This document shows positions 26,487 through 53,172 of a stretch of DNA of 64,000 nt, in pieces (the stretch's first letter is position 1; each line of letters begins with the position of its first letter). Source of the stretch: Tetramitus jugosus (lineage: Eukaryota; Protista; Heterolobosea); contig OW569346.1 in the NCBI GenBank assembly GCA_937625935.1, forward strand, positions 62,001-126,000. Direction: 5' to 3'. The notes under the pieces were generated by a model. The model was not told where the DNA came from. It saw only the letters and a program-made list of their open reading frames with translations, and made no database searches. Both the position numbers and the translations under genes were made by a program.

Positions 26487-27932
26487 TTATTGGAATGAAC
26501 GCAACAAGTCCGCCATGACAGCGTCCATTATGATTGGATGGAGTTGAGCGGAGATACATGGATATACACTCGACAAGGACAACATTAGTTGTGAGTTGAT
26601 ACTGAGTGCGTGACATGAAAGAGTGTTGCCCAGTCTCCACTGAAGAGTTGTGACAAACAACTCTTTCAGTTTCAAGTGTTCCTTTGACGAGAATGATCCA
26701 TCGACGACTCCTCTGTTGGATACGTTGAAGTGATCCAGCCTTCCACCATTTGTTTGGTCACAATAATCCATGTAGTTGGTCACATTGTCGAGCCAATTGG
26801 GTGCAGCACAGGAGTCAAACTCACCTTGATTGACGTAATCATGTATCTGTCTTTGAATTGATCGTGCCAATGTCCAAAAGTGATCATTATCGAGTGGTGT
26901 GCTCATTTCTTCCTTGATACTTGTTTTTGCAGCTAATCCAGTATAATAAAGCCCTAATTGATTCATAGGTATTGAGCACTGGTTTCTTAGCGAGACACTA
27001 ACATAGGTAGAGAAATAGGTATTTGCGGGATCATTCATGTTGTTCAGATCAAACAGGTGATGAAATCCTGAACGTATTACGGCAGCACAAATTGCTCCAT
27101 TCACTGTCGTGTTGTTCCTTCTGCATGCTGATAATAACTGGGCAGAGTCACTCTCAGATAATGTTCTGAATGCTAAAATCGCTTGTCTGTCATCTAATGG
27201 AGGAATTGAACCACAATGATTCGGATGTGGGACAGGAGTACCACATACTGTGGGTTTGTTCTCTGTATCCTCGTCATTTCTCTTTTCTTTCTTCTCAATA
27301 TTCGACAAAACAAACTCCAGAGGTGCAGAAACTGGTTCACTCGGTTTGGACATGGTCGATCCACTACCAATATATGATTCCATTTGCTCCATCAAATCAT
27401 TCAAAAGCACCATTAGTCCATGCCCATCACAGATACCATGACTTGCAGTCATGATGATCTCAAAATCAGAGCAATCACTGCCCTCCTCATTTGAGGAGTC
27501 ATAGATAAGAACCACTCTCCAGAGTAAACTCTCCTCATCCTTGTTTTCTCTTGTAATGAGTTTTCTTCCCTGCATGACCATGCTCTGAGTATATTGTTGC
27601 CAATAATCTGCGGTCTTGTCTCTCAGGTCGACACAAGACACACAACCACTCTCATGCATCATGGTCATAGCTTTGTTCAGTTCCCATTCTTGAAAGTAAT
27701 ATTGCAATTTTCCTTTTTCCTTAATACTGCAACGAAGTACTTGATAATTTTGAAGGAGTTGACCACATGACTCGAAAAATGCAGATTTCAACAAACTCGT
27801 TGAAACTGATTTGGTTGTTTGGCAACACGCAATTTGCACAGGAAGAAAAGAATCTTTCTCAACATTGGTCCAATGAAACAACGACTCGAAAGCAGACAAA
27901 TCTCTCACAAAAACAGGTGATTGTTCCATCAT
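26487..27932 (-). CDS. CoA-dependent acyltransferase (alcohol acetyltransferase/condensation-domain type)
   Basis: HxxxDG catalytic motif SHGICDG; CRRNNTTVNGAI; VSNRG; N-terminal RDLSAFE. Confidence 0.8.
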   Translation of the reverse strand: MMEQSPVFVRDLSAFESLFHWTNVEKDSFLPVQIACCQTTKSVSTSLLKSAFFESCGQLLQNYQVLRCSIKEKGKLQYYFQEWELNKAMTMMHESGCVSCVDLRDKTADYWQQYTQSMVMQGRKLITRENKDEESLLWRVVLIYDSSNEEGSDCSDFEIIMTASHGICDGHGLMVLLNDLMEQMESYIGSGSTMSKPSEPVSAPLEFVLSNIEKKEKRNDEDTENKPTVCGTPVPHPNHCGSIPPLDDRQAILAFRTLSESDSAQLLSACRRNNTTVNGAICAAVIRSGFHHLFDLNNMNDPANTYFSTYVSVSLRNQCSIPMNQLGLYYTGLAAKTSIKEEMSTPLDNDHFWTLARSIQRQIHDYVNQGEFDSCAAPNWLDNVTNYMDYCDQTNGGRLDHFNVSNRGVVDGSFSSKEHLKLKELFVTTLQWRLGNTLSCHALSINSQLMLSLSSVYPCISAQLHPIIMDAVMADLLRSFQ

Positions 27933-28277
27933 CACGATCGGTGTCACACCTGTCTCTCAACTGTTTTGTTGGTTCGAGAATTTTTGGTATGAGGTCGGAT
28001 AAATTACCAGGAATTTTGATACTTGACACCCTGTCACCCTTCCGCCGAGATACCCGTTCAGCTTTCCCCGCGTTACAAACTCGTTTGGGCACACCAATCC
28101 AGTGGCATATGTACTCAAAGCACAGACTATGAGACTAGAGTAAATTGTTCTCTTCGCTATTTTTGTAAGTTATCCGCCTTCCAAACACGAAAATCATCCA
28201 TAAACAACGATACAAATGAAGATGATGCAAGACTCATAATAACAGCAACAACAACAAAACAACACACAAACGAAGCA

Positions 28278-29210
28278 ATGACAGCATCAAACAGCACTAC
28301 GACATTTGCACACACTTCCAACTTGAATGGTGATCATAGGAGCAAGGGTGTGGGAGGTCGTGTCTCCTCTACATCACAGAAGATTGTGTGTCGTACTACA
28401 ACGAAGATTCTTGAAGAGAAGCTATCAATTGCAAATAAGAAGATTCAGTTATTGAACCAAAGTGTCACCAAACTCCAACTGGAACTAGTTCACTACAAAC
28501 AATATTTCGCTTCCATGTACCTGAACAATTCTATGAACCATAATACAGCATCAAGTGCAGTTCCAATTTCTATTGTTGCACCTGTTAATATGGCATCTGT
28601 TGAGCAGAAGATTGATAATTACATTGAGCAATCTGATGATTCTGATCCAAGCATTGCATATTTTGAAGTGTCATGTGCTTTGAAAGTATTGAAGAGCAGA
28701 GTGAAGCAAGCACGTACCCAGTCTATTAGTTTTCAACCAGAGAACACTGCATGTAATATTACTCGTGGTGAGTTTGAGAAATTGTATGATTGTCACAGAA
28801 TCCAAGAATTTCTAGGTTCAGCAACCAAGATCCTTAATAATAGATTGCAACCTGGCTTTGCGAAGAATGGAACCAATCTACATCTAGGTCAATGTCCATT
28901 TTATCTGTTCAATTATTTTATGTCTCTACAGAGCAATTGTAAGCATACAACCAAAGTTTTCCACCCAATCAGAGATGGAGTGAGAGTGAATGTCACAAAG
29001 CATTATTATAGATTCAATAATACTCTTCCTGATTTTGGATCCAGATGGCACATTCGTGATCATGGAAATGTTGTTGACTGGAGTGCAGAAATGAGATCCA
29101 TGTACCAATCCATTGTATTAATTATTAATGAAGAAGATGATAGAGTTACATGCAAGTACTCTCAAGTGTCACAATTCAAATTTTGTGATCGTTGGATAGA
29201 TACTGCATAA
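28278..29210 (+). CDS. Unknown 310-aa protein (N-terminal coiled coil), convergent partner of the RAG1-like transposase
   Basis: Intact ORF from ATG 28278; its stop lies 54 nt from the transposase stop; no kelch or PHD motifs recognisable. Confidence 0.7.
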   Translation: MTASNSTTTFAHTSNLNGDHRSKGVGGRVSSTSQKIVCRTTTKILEEKLSIANKKIQLLNQSVTKLQLELVHYKQYFASMYLNNSMNHNTASSAVPISIVAPVNMASVEQKIDNYIEQSDDSDPSIAYFEVSCALKVLKSRVKQARTQSISFQPENTACNITRGEFEKLYDCHRIQEFLGSATKILNNRLQPGFAKNGTNLHLGQCPFYLFNYFMSLQSNCKHTTKVFHPIRDGVRVNVTKHYYRFNNTLPDFGSRWHIRDHGNVVDWSAEMRSMYQSIVLIINEEDDRVTCKYSQVSQFKFCDRWIDTA

Positions 29211-29264
29211 TATGGACTAATTGTAAACAATTCATTTTTCAACTTCTGCAATGTAATTATATAC

Positions 29265-32030
29265 TCATACACTTCGAGCATTATTGATGTTGCCAATAAG
29301 CGTCTGTAGGAAAGAATCATTAGCTCCACTATACGCACGTGTGTTTCTCATCAAATCTGGATCAATTCTCTGCCTCTTATTAGAGTTATTGTCAGTTGTC
29401 ACATACAATGGATACTGTGGCTGGAACTGTTGTTGCTCTTGCACAACTGGTGCAAGTTGTGGCTGGAACTGCTGTGTTGAGTACTGTTGAGATCCGTATT
29501 GTATCAATGGATACTGCTGCTGGAATTGTGGTGGCATCTGTGGAACAAATGGATTATTCATTTCTGGAATAGGGCCATTCTGTTGAGACGAATCAATGCT
29601 GGTACTGTTTCCAATTGGTACATATGCCTTCTCTGTTGATTGTGGTAGTTCAGATACATATTGTTGCATATATCCCTCTATATCATCACCCATCTGGAGC
29701 AAATCCAGTAGTACAATCAATTTCCAGTTCTCCAATTTGTTCAATAGGAGCTTTCGTGGATCATTCTTCTTCTTTTTGCTGTTAGTTTCATCTGTTTCAT
29801 CAACGAATTCGTCATCGCTGTTACCATTATCATCTATAGGCTCCATATATTCAGAGTGTTTGCCCAGCCACTTTATATGTTCATGCTGTGCTGGTAGATA
29901 TATCTTTCTGAGGCCTTGATAGAATGTTTGCTCAAACTGAGTCTTTCTAGCAACGCCACTCTTTGCAGCTTTACCACCTGCACTTGTAGCTCGTGTCTTG
30001 GCTTTCATGTGCATAGAGTGGACATTCTCTGTTCCTTCATTCGAATATCTGCACAAAGATCCATGCTGCACCAGCAATTCCGGCAAATGTTTGATCATAA
30101 TATGAAAGTAATAGGCAAATTTGCTCGCTGGATATCTGAATCTGAGGAGACTTCCGAGTGTTTTGAGCAGTTGCTGCAGAAGCTCCATGTCTAACTCTTC
30201 AATCTCTTTGCTAGATGCCTCTACATATCTGTACATAACATATCGATGAATTTTCCAGATTGTAAGCTCCGCTGGATCTGCAATACCATCCAGCACACTC
30301 TCAAAGTTATGAAGAATCTCATTCACTTGACTGCCATTCAGATATGGTAACTTGATGTTGCTCTGATCGAAGTCATCATCATCTGGATCATTCTCTCGAG
30401 CACGAAAATCAAACTGCGAACATCCATTTAACTTTCTGATGTTCTCTTTCAGCTGCTCATGCAATGGTTGCTCCTCACGAGATCTCAACAGAATTTGTGA
30501 CAGAAGATTGCATACAGTTCTCATCTTCAAATGTAGAATACAGATCATAATAACGACATCCATTTTGTATTTCATATTCAACATTCTAGCTGCGTGATCC
30601 TTTTGAAATAAATGTCTTTCAGCTTTCTTGCACATGCAAAATGGACAGAACAGACCATTCTTGAACACATCAGATATAAGAGATAGAGCCTTCAGATCAT
30701 TAACTAAAAATAACTTTAACTTGAATTCAACTTGATCTTGAGTGAATCCATTTTCTATCCACTTCTGAATTTGTTCGAATATAGGCTTGAACCTGGTGTC
30801 CACATCCTTCTCAGTTTCTGATCCAACATACGAGGCGCAGCAAATACACGAGTCTCTTGATTGAGTTGCAAAAGTAGAGAGGTTCAATGGCGTGAAAGTC
30901 ATTGTCGTATATGCGTTTGCTCCACCATCAAATGACAGCTTTCCTTCAATAGACACTTCTCTTGGACCATCTGGAGTATACATAGAATCTCTGTGACAAC
31001 AACAAATAGCAGAATGAATGTGATGTCTCTGGTGCTTGTTTGAACTGGTACAACAATTATCAGAATGAGTGTGACGCACCTGCTGCAGTTCTTTCAATGC
31101 TCTTTTATGAATTTTGTGCATATCAGCTATTGCTTTGTCTAGTTCAATCTGTAGTCCATCCATAATTTTTGTGACACTATACTTTTCCTCTATTTCATTA
31201 TTCACATTAATTCTCGTTCGCTTGAGCGTTGACTCATGAGGTATATCATTCAAATTAGTATAACCTCGAACACCCTGCAGTAAACCATCGCTGATCATAT
31301 AATGGTCTTTCATATACAAAATTGAAAACTTATCTGTTCTTAGTGGATTTGCTTCTTTCAAAATCTGGTTGATAGTTGAATACCTATTGGATCGTTTGGA
31401 CACCTTTCCAGTTTGATCTCTGATGAAACTATCGATGATCTTATAGAAAATTTCTGGATGATATTGAAAATATAGTTCAAGAATGGCTTCCAATTATTGG
31501 CCATTCGACTCTAAAAGTTCAACGACACCGCACATCAAACGAGTAACTGTTTGTTTTTTATGACCTGCATCATCCATTTCTTTAACTAATTTGTAAGGTC
31601 TTCTGCCGCTCGTTGGTGATACAGTATGATTGTTACATTTGGCACAGTTTAAATTGAATAACTTCTTCATGTCTACATGACCAAGTGGAATAGCAGATCC
31701 AGTTGCTTCTGAATTGTTTGAATTCACTAAATTATCTTCATTTAACTTTTCGGTCATAATTGAAACAAGATAGCTTATATATGAATCACGAACTGAGCAC
31801 AATTCACTCTGCAAGAATTGATGTAACCATTTTTTATCCACGTATTTATGATTGCCAATCATCATACCAACTGGTTTATATGCTGCACTTTGTTGTGGTT
31901 TGAAATTCTTCGGCTTCTTGTCACTTCTAGTGCAGTAGTTCTTAATGAGACTTGTCAGATTGAAGTAATGAATGTCATTCACTCTTGTGAATACCAATAT
32001 ACTTGGATCAAAATTGACTTGTGCATTCAT
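29265..32030 (-). pseudogene. RAG1/Transib(-Chapaev)-clade DDE transposase of about 920 codons, with one in-frame TAA at 31494-31496
   Basis: NBD-like SGRRPYKLV; SFDGG (D1); VNDLK (D2); CPFC; ICILHLKMR. YYFHIMIKHLPELLVQHGSLCRYSNEGTE parallels RAG1 [29 protein letters not shown]. ORFs 31494-32030 and 29265-31493 are in the same frame and abut. Confidence 0.82.
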
Positions 32031-32265
32031 TTGTTCGTGTGTTGCTTGTTATTCGTGTTGTTGAAGTTCCACTTTTTTGTTGACACCAGTTCTTCTATCA
32101 ATCATAAACAATCGCACTCAAACAATGACTAGTCATCAAATTCAAATCATAATAACCAAAGATTCGTATTGGAAGGCTTTATTTGGACATATTTTAGCCA
32201 TTACATCGTTGCATGACCAAAAACGAATTGTTGATGATATCACAGCTTAGAATGGGGGGAAGTGG

Positions 32266-32296
32266 AACATACCCCACAAACCAAGCATTGAACTGT
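32266..32296 (-). repeat. 31-bp dispersed repeat, copy 1 (candidate TIR)
   Basis: Reverse complement ACAGTTCAATGCTTGGTTTGTGGGGTATGTT matches 53173-53203 at 30/31 positions. Confidence 0.85.
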
Positions 32297-32384
32297 ATTG
32301 ATGTCGACACCTTCACACCCAACCGAAACATTTGCAACACAAAACACCAAACCTCCACAACATTGAACGGTGAAATTGAAAAGT

Positions 32385-35300
32385 ATGCAACACAAGATCT
32401 TCTTCATCTTCCTCGTATTTGCCATTTTAGGTTCTTTCATTTGTTTCAACAACCAGAAGGGTGTTGTTGCTGCCAGATCGACACCAAAGGGCAAGTACCT
32501 TTATGGCATGGGAGAAAATGTAAATGGAGTCTTAGGTACAGGCCAACCAATAAGTACCATGTACTCTTCTCCTCTACCAGTACTCTTCTCCGGTTCAGCC
32601 AAAGTAACCATCCAAAGAATTTCTCCAGGTTTCCAACATGCTTCAGCCATTGTCAACAACAAGTTGTACACTTGGGGAAACAATTTACAAGGTCAATTGG
32701 GTGACAATACCACAGTTTATCAAACTGTTCCCATGCATGTCAATAAAGGTGATTTGAGGGACAAGGTGCTAGTGGACACTGCTGCGTGCTATGATTCAAC
32801 AATGGCACTCGATTCTGAAGGTAATGTGTACACATGGGGAGGAACTAACGCGTATGGAAAGTTGGGAACGGGAGATACTTTGCCTGTTGTGATACCGAAA
32901 CAAATCAACTTGACTGGAATGAGTCGTCTGGGATGTTCGAACGAATTTGCAGGAGCTTGGAATCAGAGTGATTTGTTTGTCTGGGGAAGAAATGATAGTA
33001 TGTAACTGTTGTTGATATTCACTGAGGTGTTTTTGTTGTCTCTCATACTAACATGTGTTACTAGATGGACAGTTGGGTCAAAGTTGGAAAACTCTTGCTT
33101 CTTCTCTCATTCCCCTCAGAGTTGCATTACCAAGCATGGCCATTGTAGATGTTCAGTTTGGAGCGCATTGGATATGTGTGTTGAACACTGTCGGCAGCGT
33201 ATACTGCTTTGGTTCTCAGACTGGTACGGGTAACACTTCAATCGATGCTCCAGGACAGATTTTGAAGATGGAACAGCTGGAAGCATACAATATCACACAA
33301 GTATTGAGTGTATCGAGCACATTGTATGCCGTTTCGGATCAAAAACGATACTTTACTTGGGGGGAAAACTCCAATTTGCAATATGGTGTGCCTGGATCTA
33401 ATTCTCTCCAACCAACAGAAGTACTGACACTCAATGTTACTTTGGGAGATAGGCTTCATTCAGGCCCGTTTGCAGAGAGTACCTATGTCATTTCTAGCGA
33501 CAATCGTTTGTATGGATGGGGAAAGAGTTTACAGATGCAGTTGGGTCAAAATGCATCCTTAATCAGATCTTTACCTGTGGAAGTATTTCAAATTGACTTA
33601 ACAAAACAGAGGTTTGCAGCAGTTTATCCAGGATATGCGTACTCTTTGTTTGAAATTGAGGATATTGAGTGCTTTGGTTTTGTCAAGAATGACATAGGAG
33701 TGTGTTCTGGTCATGGTGCTTGTATTGGCGAAGACACGTGTAATTGCACAAATCAAGGTTACACTGGTCCAACTTGTAACCTTCCCATTTGTTTTGGATT
33801 TTCGAATCAGAGGGCTTGTAGTGGCGTCGGTAATTGTACTTCTCCTGATCACTGTGAGTGTTCGTATGGATACGGGAGTTTGGATTGCTCCTTGGCAGAC
33901 TGTCCTGAGGCCAATCTTTGTCTGTCATCATCATCGTGCTTAGGTAATTGTTTACGAATTAACAATGTGACGATAAATGATTTTGGATCAGTGTTCACGA
34001 TGAATAGAATGAAGGGAATCGAATTTAGGCCTAGGATGTCCTCTTCAGATGTTTCACCAACATTGATCTACTCATGGACATACAAGATACTATCTGGTAG
34101 TAGCTCTGTGAATATGAAGATCACACACAATGGTGATTCCATTCGACTGATACCTTGGAACTCGCTCGGTATTTCTTCCAATACCTCCTTGTTAATTACA
34201 TTGGATATTGCTGGTATTAGTTCTTCGAACAGTGTATCCTTCACTGTTGTAACAAGAGAAAATCAGAAGATTGAACCATTTGGCGCACCACTCTTGGTTT
34301 CTCCAAACGAAGGGAGAGAGTTGTTTGATTCATTCACTTTGAAACCAATGAATTGGCCGAACAGTGGAGATTTAGTGTTCTCACTATCCTATTATGATTC
34401 CAGATATGGTAGATACATTAAGATAAGTGATAGATTATCTGACTCGAATTCTGTCGTTTCAACACTTCCCAGAGGAAGATCTAAAGACAATATGCTTCCT
34501 ATTCGATTAGATATATTGAATGCAGAGAATGGTGATGTGGGGTTATATGAGACTGAAGTGAAGGTCATACCTAGTACAGATGCTGACGTTCCTCTTGATG
34601 AACAAACCAATAGAATTATCGAGGATGACATCTACTCTAATGTTGTTGTATTTGTGGCTCGATTACTGGACTCCTCGTTCTCTATTGACTTGAGAGATCG
34701 AGCATTTGAAGATATCTTGAACTATACATGGACCAAGAGTTTCATACAGTTGGGTAATGATACTGTACTTCCAGAACACCAATTGACAGTAGTTAACTAT
34801 ATTACAAGAAATTCAACATTGAGTTCCACAACCGGTAAGACTGCAGCTATAGGAAGTTTACAAAATATTCTCCTTCAAATTTCACAGAATGATCAACTGG
34901 ACCCACTAGTGAATACGGATAATAATGAAGTCATAGCAAATACAGTGTCTAACATCCTAGCTGAAGGAATATCTGAAAAGTCTCTCAGTAGTATGCTCCT
35001 AGATGTGACCTCAGACTTTTCCCAATTGTTAGGTCGAAGAAAAATTCTTTCAGAACCTGCAACTGTGATTATAGCTCCCAACTTTGAGCTAAATGTCAGA
35101 ACAGAAGTTGTAGAACAATTGTCTCAAGAAAAGATTTCTACTCAGATGAATGGTACCAACGGTTTCTCTATCTCGAGAAACTTTGGTTCTGAGGTTGGGT
35201 ATACCTCAGTTGCGTACAGTCTTGCTGTGTTTAGGCAAAATCCGTATGGAATCGATCCAGTGGGGTCTTCATCAAGTTCAAACCTGCCTGTTGTTGACAT

Positions 35301-36945
35301 TAAATTCAAAACTGACCTAGGAGAAAATATTCAAGTGGACAACCTTCAGGAGGCCATCATGATTGAATTGGAGATTGATCCAGGATTAGCAAACAATAAC
35401 ATTGAATGCAGGTATTTCAACGAGACAGAAAGCAAGTGGAAAAATGATGGTTGTGTCCTTGTGAGTGTATTTAGCGACAGAATTGTCTGTGCATGTAATC
35501 ATACTACCAGTTTTTCGGCGTTTGTTCTTGATAGCAGCTCTCACCCTCGTGTAGCATCCAAGATTGTACAAATCGTCTTCAATTGTATCTATATTGTGAT
35601 CTGCATCGCTATACTGATTGGATTACTTGTCATGCGAAATGAACAACCAATCAAATCTCGAGCAATTGCACCAGTCATCGGTATGAGTTCGGTTCTTGTT
35701 GATGCCACCATTCAAGGATTAATCAGAAACAGTTTAGCATTAGCATCCAAGTACAAAGCATCCAATACCTTCTCGTATGTGATCATGCTGACTGCTAATG
35801 CTTTAACTGTGACAGCACTGTTTGTCTACCTGGTTCAACAAGTTCGCTTCATTCTGCTAGAGAATCTGTACAGTATCATGGCCCTTCAACGAGATAGTAA
35901 GAGGACAATCAAGATCATTCGACTGTTCATTTCGAACAAGTTGTTTGTAGGTTGTGCAGTACTCATATACTCTCTTGTTATAGCCTACTTTGCTATTCTT
36001 GTTGGAATATCTGCCCATTACAACAGCAACGTATCAAAATGGATGAAACAAAGAGATGCTACGACTACAGTTCAAGTGATCTCTTTGTCTGTTTTCATGT
36101 TCTGTATTGCTCTGGGCATATTTGCATGTTTCATACTTGATATAGTGTTATTTGTGAGTCGGATGAAGCGACAAGCTCCTTTGGCAGACGAAAGCCAAGA
36201 CAAAAAGAAGCAGTGGAAATTTCAAGGAGTGAAATTGTTCACTAGCGACCCATTATGGTTCAGATACGAAGCAGTTTCAATTTGTATCTTTTTACTGTTG
36301 ATTGTCATTCTGTACAGCACTGGAATAGATATCATTTGGAGTAAGAATACAAATGAAAGTAGTGGCGTCTTAATATTCAACACCATTGTTGAAATATTAA
36401 TGATGTTCACAAAGATTGTGGCTTTTGGTGGCATGGTGTGTGTTGCATCCATCCATAACTTTAGACAGAGAAAAAAGTTCCAAGACCAATGCACTGAGGA
36501 TAATATTGACTCTAGAGATATTGTTTCCAAGCTGCTATACAACAACGAAGGATACATCATGTTCCACCAATATTGTCAAATGGAGCATTCTTTGGAAAAT
36601 TTATTGTTATGGAAGTACATTGATCAATTGAAGGAAAAGAACGTGGAATCATTGGAAACAAAGGAGAAGAGAGATATCATACTTCATATTGAAACAACAT
36701 TTATCGCCAATGGAAGTGAAATGCAGGTCAATATTTCGTCCAAAGTGAGAAAAACGTTCCTCTCTGTGCGCAACGATCCAGAGGCAACTCAATTTGCTCA
36801 AGCACTTAAAGACCTTACTCAAGCATGTATGGCAAACATGTCCGAAACGTTTACTCGCCTTAGCACGACAACTCAATACGCACACTTTATCCAAGCCGAA
36901 GAATTGAGTATGGAGTTAAAGGAAACATTCACTGCACGTCAATAA
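32385..36945 (+). CDS. Adhesion-GPCR-like receptor: RCC1 repeats, EGF, REJ, GPS, 7TM, RGS; intron 32998-33064
   Basis: Signal peptide; WGxNxxGQLG RCC1 repeats, with the GTATGT..TACTAAC..TAG intron restoring GRNDNGQLG; EGF repeats; GPS CRYF..W..GC..CACNHTTSF; seven hydrophobic helices; RGS YCQMEHSLENLL..QVNIS..ETFTRL. Confidence 0.88.
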
Positions 36946-52873: not shown

Positions 52874-53172
52874 GATGTTTCTCGTAGAATTTGTGTTTAT
52901 TGTTGGGTGCAAGGGTATGTTGTTGTTTTCGAAACAAAAGGCTTGGCAGCTCCCCAAAACGTTTTTGAAACCCTGGTCCAATTTCCAGAAAATGGAAGGA
53001 TCAAGAAAAGATTAGAAATCTTGCAAAATTAGCGCACTTTCGGAAATACACAACAGTTTGTCTTTTAAGGAGAATGGGACATTTTTATTCTTTTATGTCA
53101 TACTCTGGTCACTCTGCTGTGGTCAACACAGCATATGCGTGGATTCTCATACTCACGAACACAAAACACAAA

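Follow-up and report, generated by a model that had tools for sequence, protein, structure and literature searches.

A two-gene RAG1-like transposon of Tetramitus jugosus, apparently inserted without target-site duplication

To our knowledge, all described transposons of the RAG1/Transib type work either alone or with RAG2, and all duplicate target bases. RAG, ProtoRAG and HzTransib make 5-bp target duplications, and Transib encodes no RAG2-like protein (bioRxiv 2023.08.20.553239). In the wider CMCT group (EnSpm/CACTA, Mirage, Chapaev, Plavaka, ESTA and Lanisha), all listed lineages duplicate 2–5 bp and most have CA..TG termini (PMC12730594). Spy, an IS5/PIF-related cut-and-paste element with terminal inverted repeats and a single long open reading frame (ORF), leaves no target duplication, and the fixed AAA/TTT triplets at its boundaries proved to be host DNA (PMC4122938). 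Here we analyse a stretch of 64,000 nucleotides from the heterolobosean Tetramitus jugosus (assembly GCA_937625935.1, contig OW569346.1, positions 62,001–126,000 of the forward strand; the window). It carries, at 28095–32300, an element with a transposase gene and a second gene, ORF2, that apparently represents a new two-gene, duplication-free lineage of RAG1/Transib-type transposons. We found no description of the element or its partner protein in the searchable literature, a coverage that leaves out Repbase Reports and most subscription journals.

The element is 4206 bp long (37.5% GC) and is delimited by 9-bp imperfect inverted repeats, CAAT...ATTG. Searched at the DNA level, the genome (26.35 Mb, 56 contigs) yielded five full copies, on contigs C3, C9, C10, C40 and C45. 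All five (L031–L035) are 4206 bp long and base-for-base identical, and their flanks are unrelated to one another. Each starts with CAATCCAGT (left repeat, 28095–28103, plus strand), of which the outer CAA may be target-derived, and ends with the reverse complement of CAATACAGT (right repeat, 32292–32300, minus strand), which matches the left repeat at 8/9 positions; an identical 9-mer ends the relative L038. Public read data of the same organism consisted of assembled contigs, which drop rare variants and show neither strand nor level. A single such contig spans exactly 28095–32300 with 0 differences. At the window site an empty allele, with 28040 joined to 32314, is present in runs X2 and X5. 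Five identical copies with unrelated flanks, together with an allele that skips the element, show that it is recently mobile and missing from some alleles at this site.

On either side of the insertion point, which falls in a gap of 200 bp, are divergent host genes (26487–27947, minus strand; 32370 onward, plus strand), so that the gene pair separates their 5′ ends. This arrangement was recognized in a preliminary description made from the sequence alone, which placed the unit at 28176–32296; its two-gene content stands, and its limits are replaced by 28095–32300. The mobile two-gene element proposed there is borne out, since both genes lie inside all five identical copies with unrelated flanks, and diverged linked pairs occur elsewhere in the genome. 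We regard the element as almost certainly a two-gene RAG1-like transposon.

The transposase frame runs on the minus strand from 32030 to 29265 and holds 921 codons and a terminal stop, with one internal TAA. As first reported for a frame of about 920 codons, its motifs follow the RAG1 order and lie at the positions given. The first catalytic Asp, of SFDGG (30927–30929), is the counterpart of RAG1 D600 and is Asp in 16 of 18 aligned family members; the second, of NDLK (30696–30698; RAG1 D708), is invariant. The catalytic Glu (30027–30029), counterpart of RAG1 E962 by alignment, is likewise invariant in the family. A zinc site (30087–30647), composed of CxxC at 30636–30647 and H-x4-H at 30087–30104, keeps its ligands across the family, and an LH motif lies at about 30531–30536. 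The catalytic part (29265–31493, minus) comprises an RNase H DDE core, a zinc insertion domain and a Q-rich tail. It is preceded by 178 residues (31497–32030, minus) that form a small alpha/beta domain with a CxxC and a basic stretch, homologous to the N termini of intact relatives. The GRRP motif (31596–31607, minus), previously likened to a nonamer-binding helix and comparable to the GRPR/K motif of RAGL proteins, is present in the window copy but not conserved, relatives being basic but variable here, and it points only weakly to a nonamer-binding domain.

Similarity to RAG1 is faint in sequence and clear in modelled structure. The two pieces of the interrupted transposase were searched separately (in the alignment, X stands for the stop). 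A single-sequence search of the PDB placed RAG1 top but weakly (E 0.006), across H-x4-H...EG-x-E, and it is this alignment that sets the final Glu on RAG1 E962. A profile search of PDB sequences did not recover RAG1, and Pfam gave no match for the transposase or for ORF2. Homologues amount to 141 cluster representatives at E≤0.001, with Naegleria gruberi, N. lovaniensis, Willaertia magna, Pharyngomonas kirbyi and the amoebozoan Planoprotostelium fungivorum among the named sources, which agree with the discoban host supposed in the preliminary description; P0001 (827 aa, 51%) and P0002 (839 aa, 32%) are intact. The fold comparison used an AlphaFold model of P0001, the intact 51%-identical homologue (mean pLDDT 75). 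This model matches RAG1 with a Foldseek E of 5e-12, and its VIA Z scores are 21.4 for RAG1 (r.m.s.d. 8.4, 475 aligned), 19.4 for BbRAG1L and 15.6 for HzTransib, followed by 11.1 for the P element and 9.9 for ISCth4. The RAG1/Transib-like fold predicted for the window gene is therefore found in the model of its intact homologue. No Chapaev or CACTA structure was among the matches, so the ranking does not show RAG1 to be closer than those groups are. The language-model neighbours of the transposase all score 0.96 and comprise RAG1 clusters, one DUF1280 cluster and clusters from eukaryotes. No relative turned up when metagenome, viral and prokaryotic collections were scanned by pattern, a search of low sensitivity. 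The tree, a quick version, holds family members only, without RAG1, Transib or Chapaev.

ORF2 (28278–29210, plus strand) is an intact frame of 310 residues that converges on the transposase gene with 54 nt between the stops, as initially noted. Its N terminus is variable and likely forms a coiled coil. Conservation is confined to a C-terminal domain of about 150 residues (28720–29207, plus; 24–52% identity; invariant E, F, L, P, P and W), which AlphaFold predicts to be a long helix plus a beta-meander, mostly basic (mean pLDDT 85). The domain alignment contains no conserved His or acidic triad. The domain model reached a best VIA Z of 5.0 in the PDB with no Foldseek match at E≤0.001, and a TM of ≤0.38 in the atlas; the modelled domain is thus without structural match, which does not in itself prove a new fold. 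The suggestion that the partner is unrelated to kelch RAG2 holds up: ORF2 matches no Pfam or PDB family, and the modelled domain is no kelch propeller. Gasdermin-like rows were rejected as weak (E 0.02–0.7, TM about 0.24), as was an EndoU ribonuclease assignment, a language-model lead (0.91, low recognition) unsupported by structure or conserved residues.

The two genes travel together. ORF2 homologues adjoin six diverged elements in the same genome, all in convergent orientation (C26, C4 twice, C16, C25 and C50), and there is a further, weak remnant at C38. The ORF2 domain also adjoins the transposase at 9 of 10 external loci. It is convergent at L038, L039, L044, L045, L049 (N. lovaniensis) and L052 (N. 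gruberi), and tandem, upstream on the same strand, at L046, L048 (W. magna) and L053 (P. fungivorum); the matches at L046, L048, L052 and L053 do not depend on the profile, and those at the three tandem loci are weak (E 1e-4 to 3e-7, small search). Convergence, emphasized in the preliminary description, is thus a property of the window element and most relatives but not a fixed feature. Retention of ORF2 is near-universal, down to about 20% transposase identity. That ORF2 might be an unlinked, single-copy host gene is ruled out by its presence within five copies and its linkage to the transposase in many genomes. Hence, judged by sequence comparison, ORF2 belongs to the element and is co-inherited with the transposase.

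We found paired inverted ends that start with CAA at 11 insertions: the five copies, C26, L039, L044, L049, L052 and, as a candidate, L053. Alignment of their flanks, by which inverted ends and a target-site duplication were to be sought, yielded the former but not the latter. No direct repeat stands at the boundary of any of the 11 insertions, and no offset or hidden direct repeat is shared across them at any offset. Absence of a target-site duplication is therefore very probable. Neighbour-gene look-ups for empty sites, in N. lovaniensis and for L044, returned the filled contig only, and filled sites cannot assign CAA/TTG to element or target. We favour CAA/TTG as element ends because of the CA..TG rule of CMCT lineages and because ends in the C4 family read CACA, followed by variable bases. 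In the C26/C32 family, CAAGACAA is retained from one site to another. The ends of the C26 and Planoprotostelium elements read CAAG...CTTG, the latter being candidates from a single copy, and the host-gene frame at C26 is open under both end models.

The flanks of the five full copies show cross-side complementarity at offsets 2–4 in 11/15 cases. Offset 2 is complementary at 5/5 sites, with different bases, and offset 1 at 0/5. This mirror symmetry has a P of about 0.001–0.007 relative to random host positions, with n=5 sites and the pattern noticed post hoc. Offset 4 is A/T in 21/22 ends across families. We treat the site-specific mirror symmetry of the five-copy family, seen at five sites only, as a lead; it is of note because RAG prefers hairpin targets (PMC1618415).

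At C4:468467–476541 (L007, L008, L023, L024, L041 and L042) lies a composite of two related elements, ordered transposase-ORF2-ORF2-transposase. Its outer ends match (CACAATGAGATAG), its inner ends are degenerate and separated by 4 bp, and the second transposase is split over two frames. The element at C26:338681–342847 (L006, L025 and L040) is an uninterrupted relative with a 1036-aa frame and ORF2, apparently inserted just past a host start codon. Its 14-bp ends contain CACAGT, and one end has a full heptamer of the recombination signal sequence, CACAGTG, eight bases in, which may be chance.

The in-frame TAA, codon 179 of the window transposase (31494–31496, minus), is common to 5/5 copies and is a sense codon in relatives. 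The preliminary description mentioned repair of the stop only among its checks; the frame is in fact interrupted. The 178 residues before the TAA align with the N termini of intact relatives, which identifies one gene, interrupted. An element-length read contig of run X1, a run that is probably RNA because a host intron is spliced in it, shows neither splice nor variant letter at the TAA; an intron or editing across it was not seen in the read contigs, from which rare variants are dropped. The next Met, Met240, sits in the first domain of the core, inside a predicted helix that is conserved. Elsewhere in the genome, C26 (1036 aa) and C4 (999 aa) carry family members without interruption. Since all five copies carry the TAA, the family is probably moved in trans. 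Low-depth contigs of runs X1 and X4 (window 28657–30951) are about 87–89% identical to both genes, and the read contigs hold a second right end whose last 45 bp are shared with the element. Together these point to a sister element, missing from the assembly, that likely supplies the transposase. A 1.3-kb element on C24 (163501–164814; L022) has inverted ends and an intact ORF2 homologue as its only gene, as expected if the proteins act in trans; more ORF2-only remnants lie on C24 and C23.

Like RAG1/RAG2 and ProtoRAG/RAGL (BbeRAGL and AanRAGL), the element combines a RAG1-like fold, a DDE triad and a C2H2 zinc site. It shares with RAGL two genes within inverted ends, convergent and in some members tandem, as in AanRAGL (PMC9435367). 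It differs in having as partner a helix-plus-sheet domain of about 150 residues instead of the kelch propeller and PHD of RAG2, in lacking a 5-bp duplication, and in its short CAAT ends, in which no heptamer-spacer-nonamer layout was recognized; structural identity is about 12%. No RING or Chapa domain was detected. With no RAG2, no 5-bp duplication and no CAC heptamer end in the window element's family, a place within ProtoRAG/RAGL, the comparison drawn at the outset, is not upheld. The element resembles Transib (HzTransib) in fold (Z 15.6) and in its short inverted ends, and the C4 family end CACAATG is what we take to be Transib-type; unlike Transib, it has a conserved second gene, no duplication seen and an extra N-terminal domain. 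It fits the CMCT group, with a RAG1/Transib-like fold (in the P0001 model), except for the missing duplication; its apparent ends are CA..TG, of which CAA/TTG could be target-derived. With Spy it shares cut-and-paste movement, terminal inverted repeats, a boundary marked by a fixed trinucleotide and the lack of a target duplication, whereas it is RAG1-like, has two genes and is bounded by CAA/TTG rather than AAA|TTT.

We propose that the element encodes two proteins and moves by cut and paste, as a DNA transposon of the RAG1/Transib-like (CMCT) DDE group. A transposase dimer would bind the CAA-starting ends and excise the element, probably through nicking and hairpin formation as in RAG and Transib. 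Both ends would be joined at or near one target bond; with no stagger, nothing would be duplicated. Targets would be weakly mirror-symmetric, with A/T four bases out. ORF2 would serve with the transposase as an accessory subunit, most likely for end pairing or target capture, and would be an independently recruited functional analogue of RAG2. The five TAA copies would supply ORF2 only and be moved in trans by an intact transposase, probably that of the sister element about 87–89% identical, which is present in read contigs and absent from the assembly. We place this whole chain, of unstaggered cut-and-paste, an accessory subunit and mobilization in trans, a little above even odds. More speculative, and in our view rather doubtful, is a separate, superfamily-level protist lineage whose RAG1-like transposase depends on a partner with an undescribed fold; this partner would alter target capture, making insertion unstaggered and biased to mirror-symmetric, hairpin-prone sites.

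Several points weigh against the proposed chain. Scored against the empty allele, which is heavily diverged, a CAATTG-containing site has a slight advantage over a blunt join (53 versus 47), and 4.6% of random hexamers do at least as well. Blunt joining is read from filled sites only, in which small target deletions would escape notice. The hairpin chemistry is assumed from relatives. The reading frame of the sister element is not seen in read contigs, the source in trans being deduced. Co-inheritance of ORF2 suits a regulator equally well, so its role as accessory subunit is a reading of the sequence pattern.

The alternatives address different steps and are not mutually exclusive. As in Spy, whose fixed AAA/TTT was host DNA (PMC4122938), the outer CAA/TTG might be host target, with insertion in the middle of CAA|TTG, the element's own ends beginning one base after CAA, and no duplication. 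Nearly every paired end starts CAA, CAATTG gives the slightly better alignment to the diverged empty allele, this hexamer is common in host DNA (0.77 per kb), and the flank symmetry would extend a 14-bp imperfect palindrome. Against this stand the mostly CA..TG termini of CMCT elements (PMC12730594), the C4 family's CACA ends with varying next bases and the retention of CAAGACAA across sites in C26/C32; moreover, the terminal base would have to vary, T versus G, between families. We consider a Spy-like target unlikely. A 2-bp AT duplication hidden inside a fixed CAATTG target, ESTA- or ISL2EU-like, is a very remote prospect: CAAT...ATTG can be read as CA-AT-element-AT-TG in five families, and the RAG1-like CMCT lineage ESTA duplicates a fixed TA (PMC12730594), but the CAAG...CTTG ends of C26 and Planoprotostelium (in the latter from one copy) hold no direct repeat.

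Accessory genes of TnpA/VANC type occur in CACTA and MULE elements. ORF2 could similarly be cargo outside the transposition machine, such as an anti-silencing factor, transcription regulator or nucleic-acid-binding protein, a possibility that we take seriously while thinking it the lesser one. Gene order varies between convergent and tandem, ORF2-only derivatives persist, and the EndoU lead points in the same direction, though it has no structural backing and ORF2 has no conserved histidines; near-universal retention, even where transposases are only about 20% identical, is what a required cofactor would show, without being proof. The TAA copies might themselves be autonomous, by read-through or by re-initiation at Met240 with a separate N-terminal piece. 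The stop is common to all five recent copies, their catalytic half is otherwise intact, and a single contig covers the element in a run with a spliced host intron. Yet neither splice nor edit is seen at the stop, Met240 lies inside the conserved helix, other genes end in TAA, so the genetic code is standard, and uninterrupted members (C26 and C4) are available in the same genome. Autonomy is accordingly quite improbable.

If a partner-dependent, unstaggered lineage is real, it would be a second independent two-component enzyme of the RAG1/RAG2 style, and a natural case of insertion without duplication. The same enzyme with an unrelated partner and nothing duplicated suggests, by analogy, independent recruitment of the partner and hence that accessory-subunit recruitment happened more than once. 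The bearing on RAG origins is one of analogy, not of shown ancestry, and the element alone does not change the origin story of RAG. The lineage offers a direct comparison for the contribution of RAG2 and for the determinants of target stagger, and uninterrupted natural members in culturable amoebae, for example N. gruberi, make these questions testable.

The N-terminal domain (P0001 residues 1–97; window 31740–32030) gives weak structural rows with Bro-N and winged-helix-like proteins, and some family members carry Ulp1 or Zn2Cys6 domains. A frameshifted transposase relative at C46:503–4547 (L010 and L014) adjoins telomeric repeat. A right-end fragment of the element, with 398 bp visible, lies within a URI1/prefoldin-like coding frame (C20:60615–61012; L036), and a decayed 35-bp copy of the right end occurs at window 53134–53168 (C3:115169–115203). 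Outside the element, the host gene to its left (26487–27947, minus) is PapA_C/AATase acyltransferase-like. The receptor-like gene to its right (32370–36945, plus) has RCC1 repeats, EGF, GPS and a C-terminal RGS, and its 67-nt GT-AG intron (32998–33064) is the one spliced in run X1.

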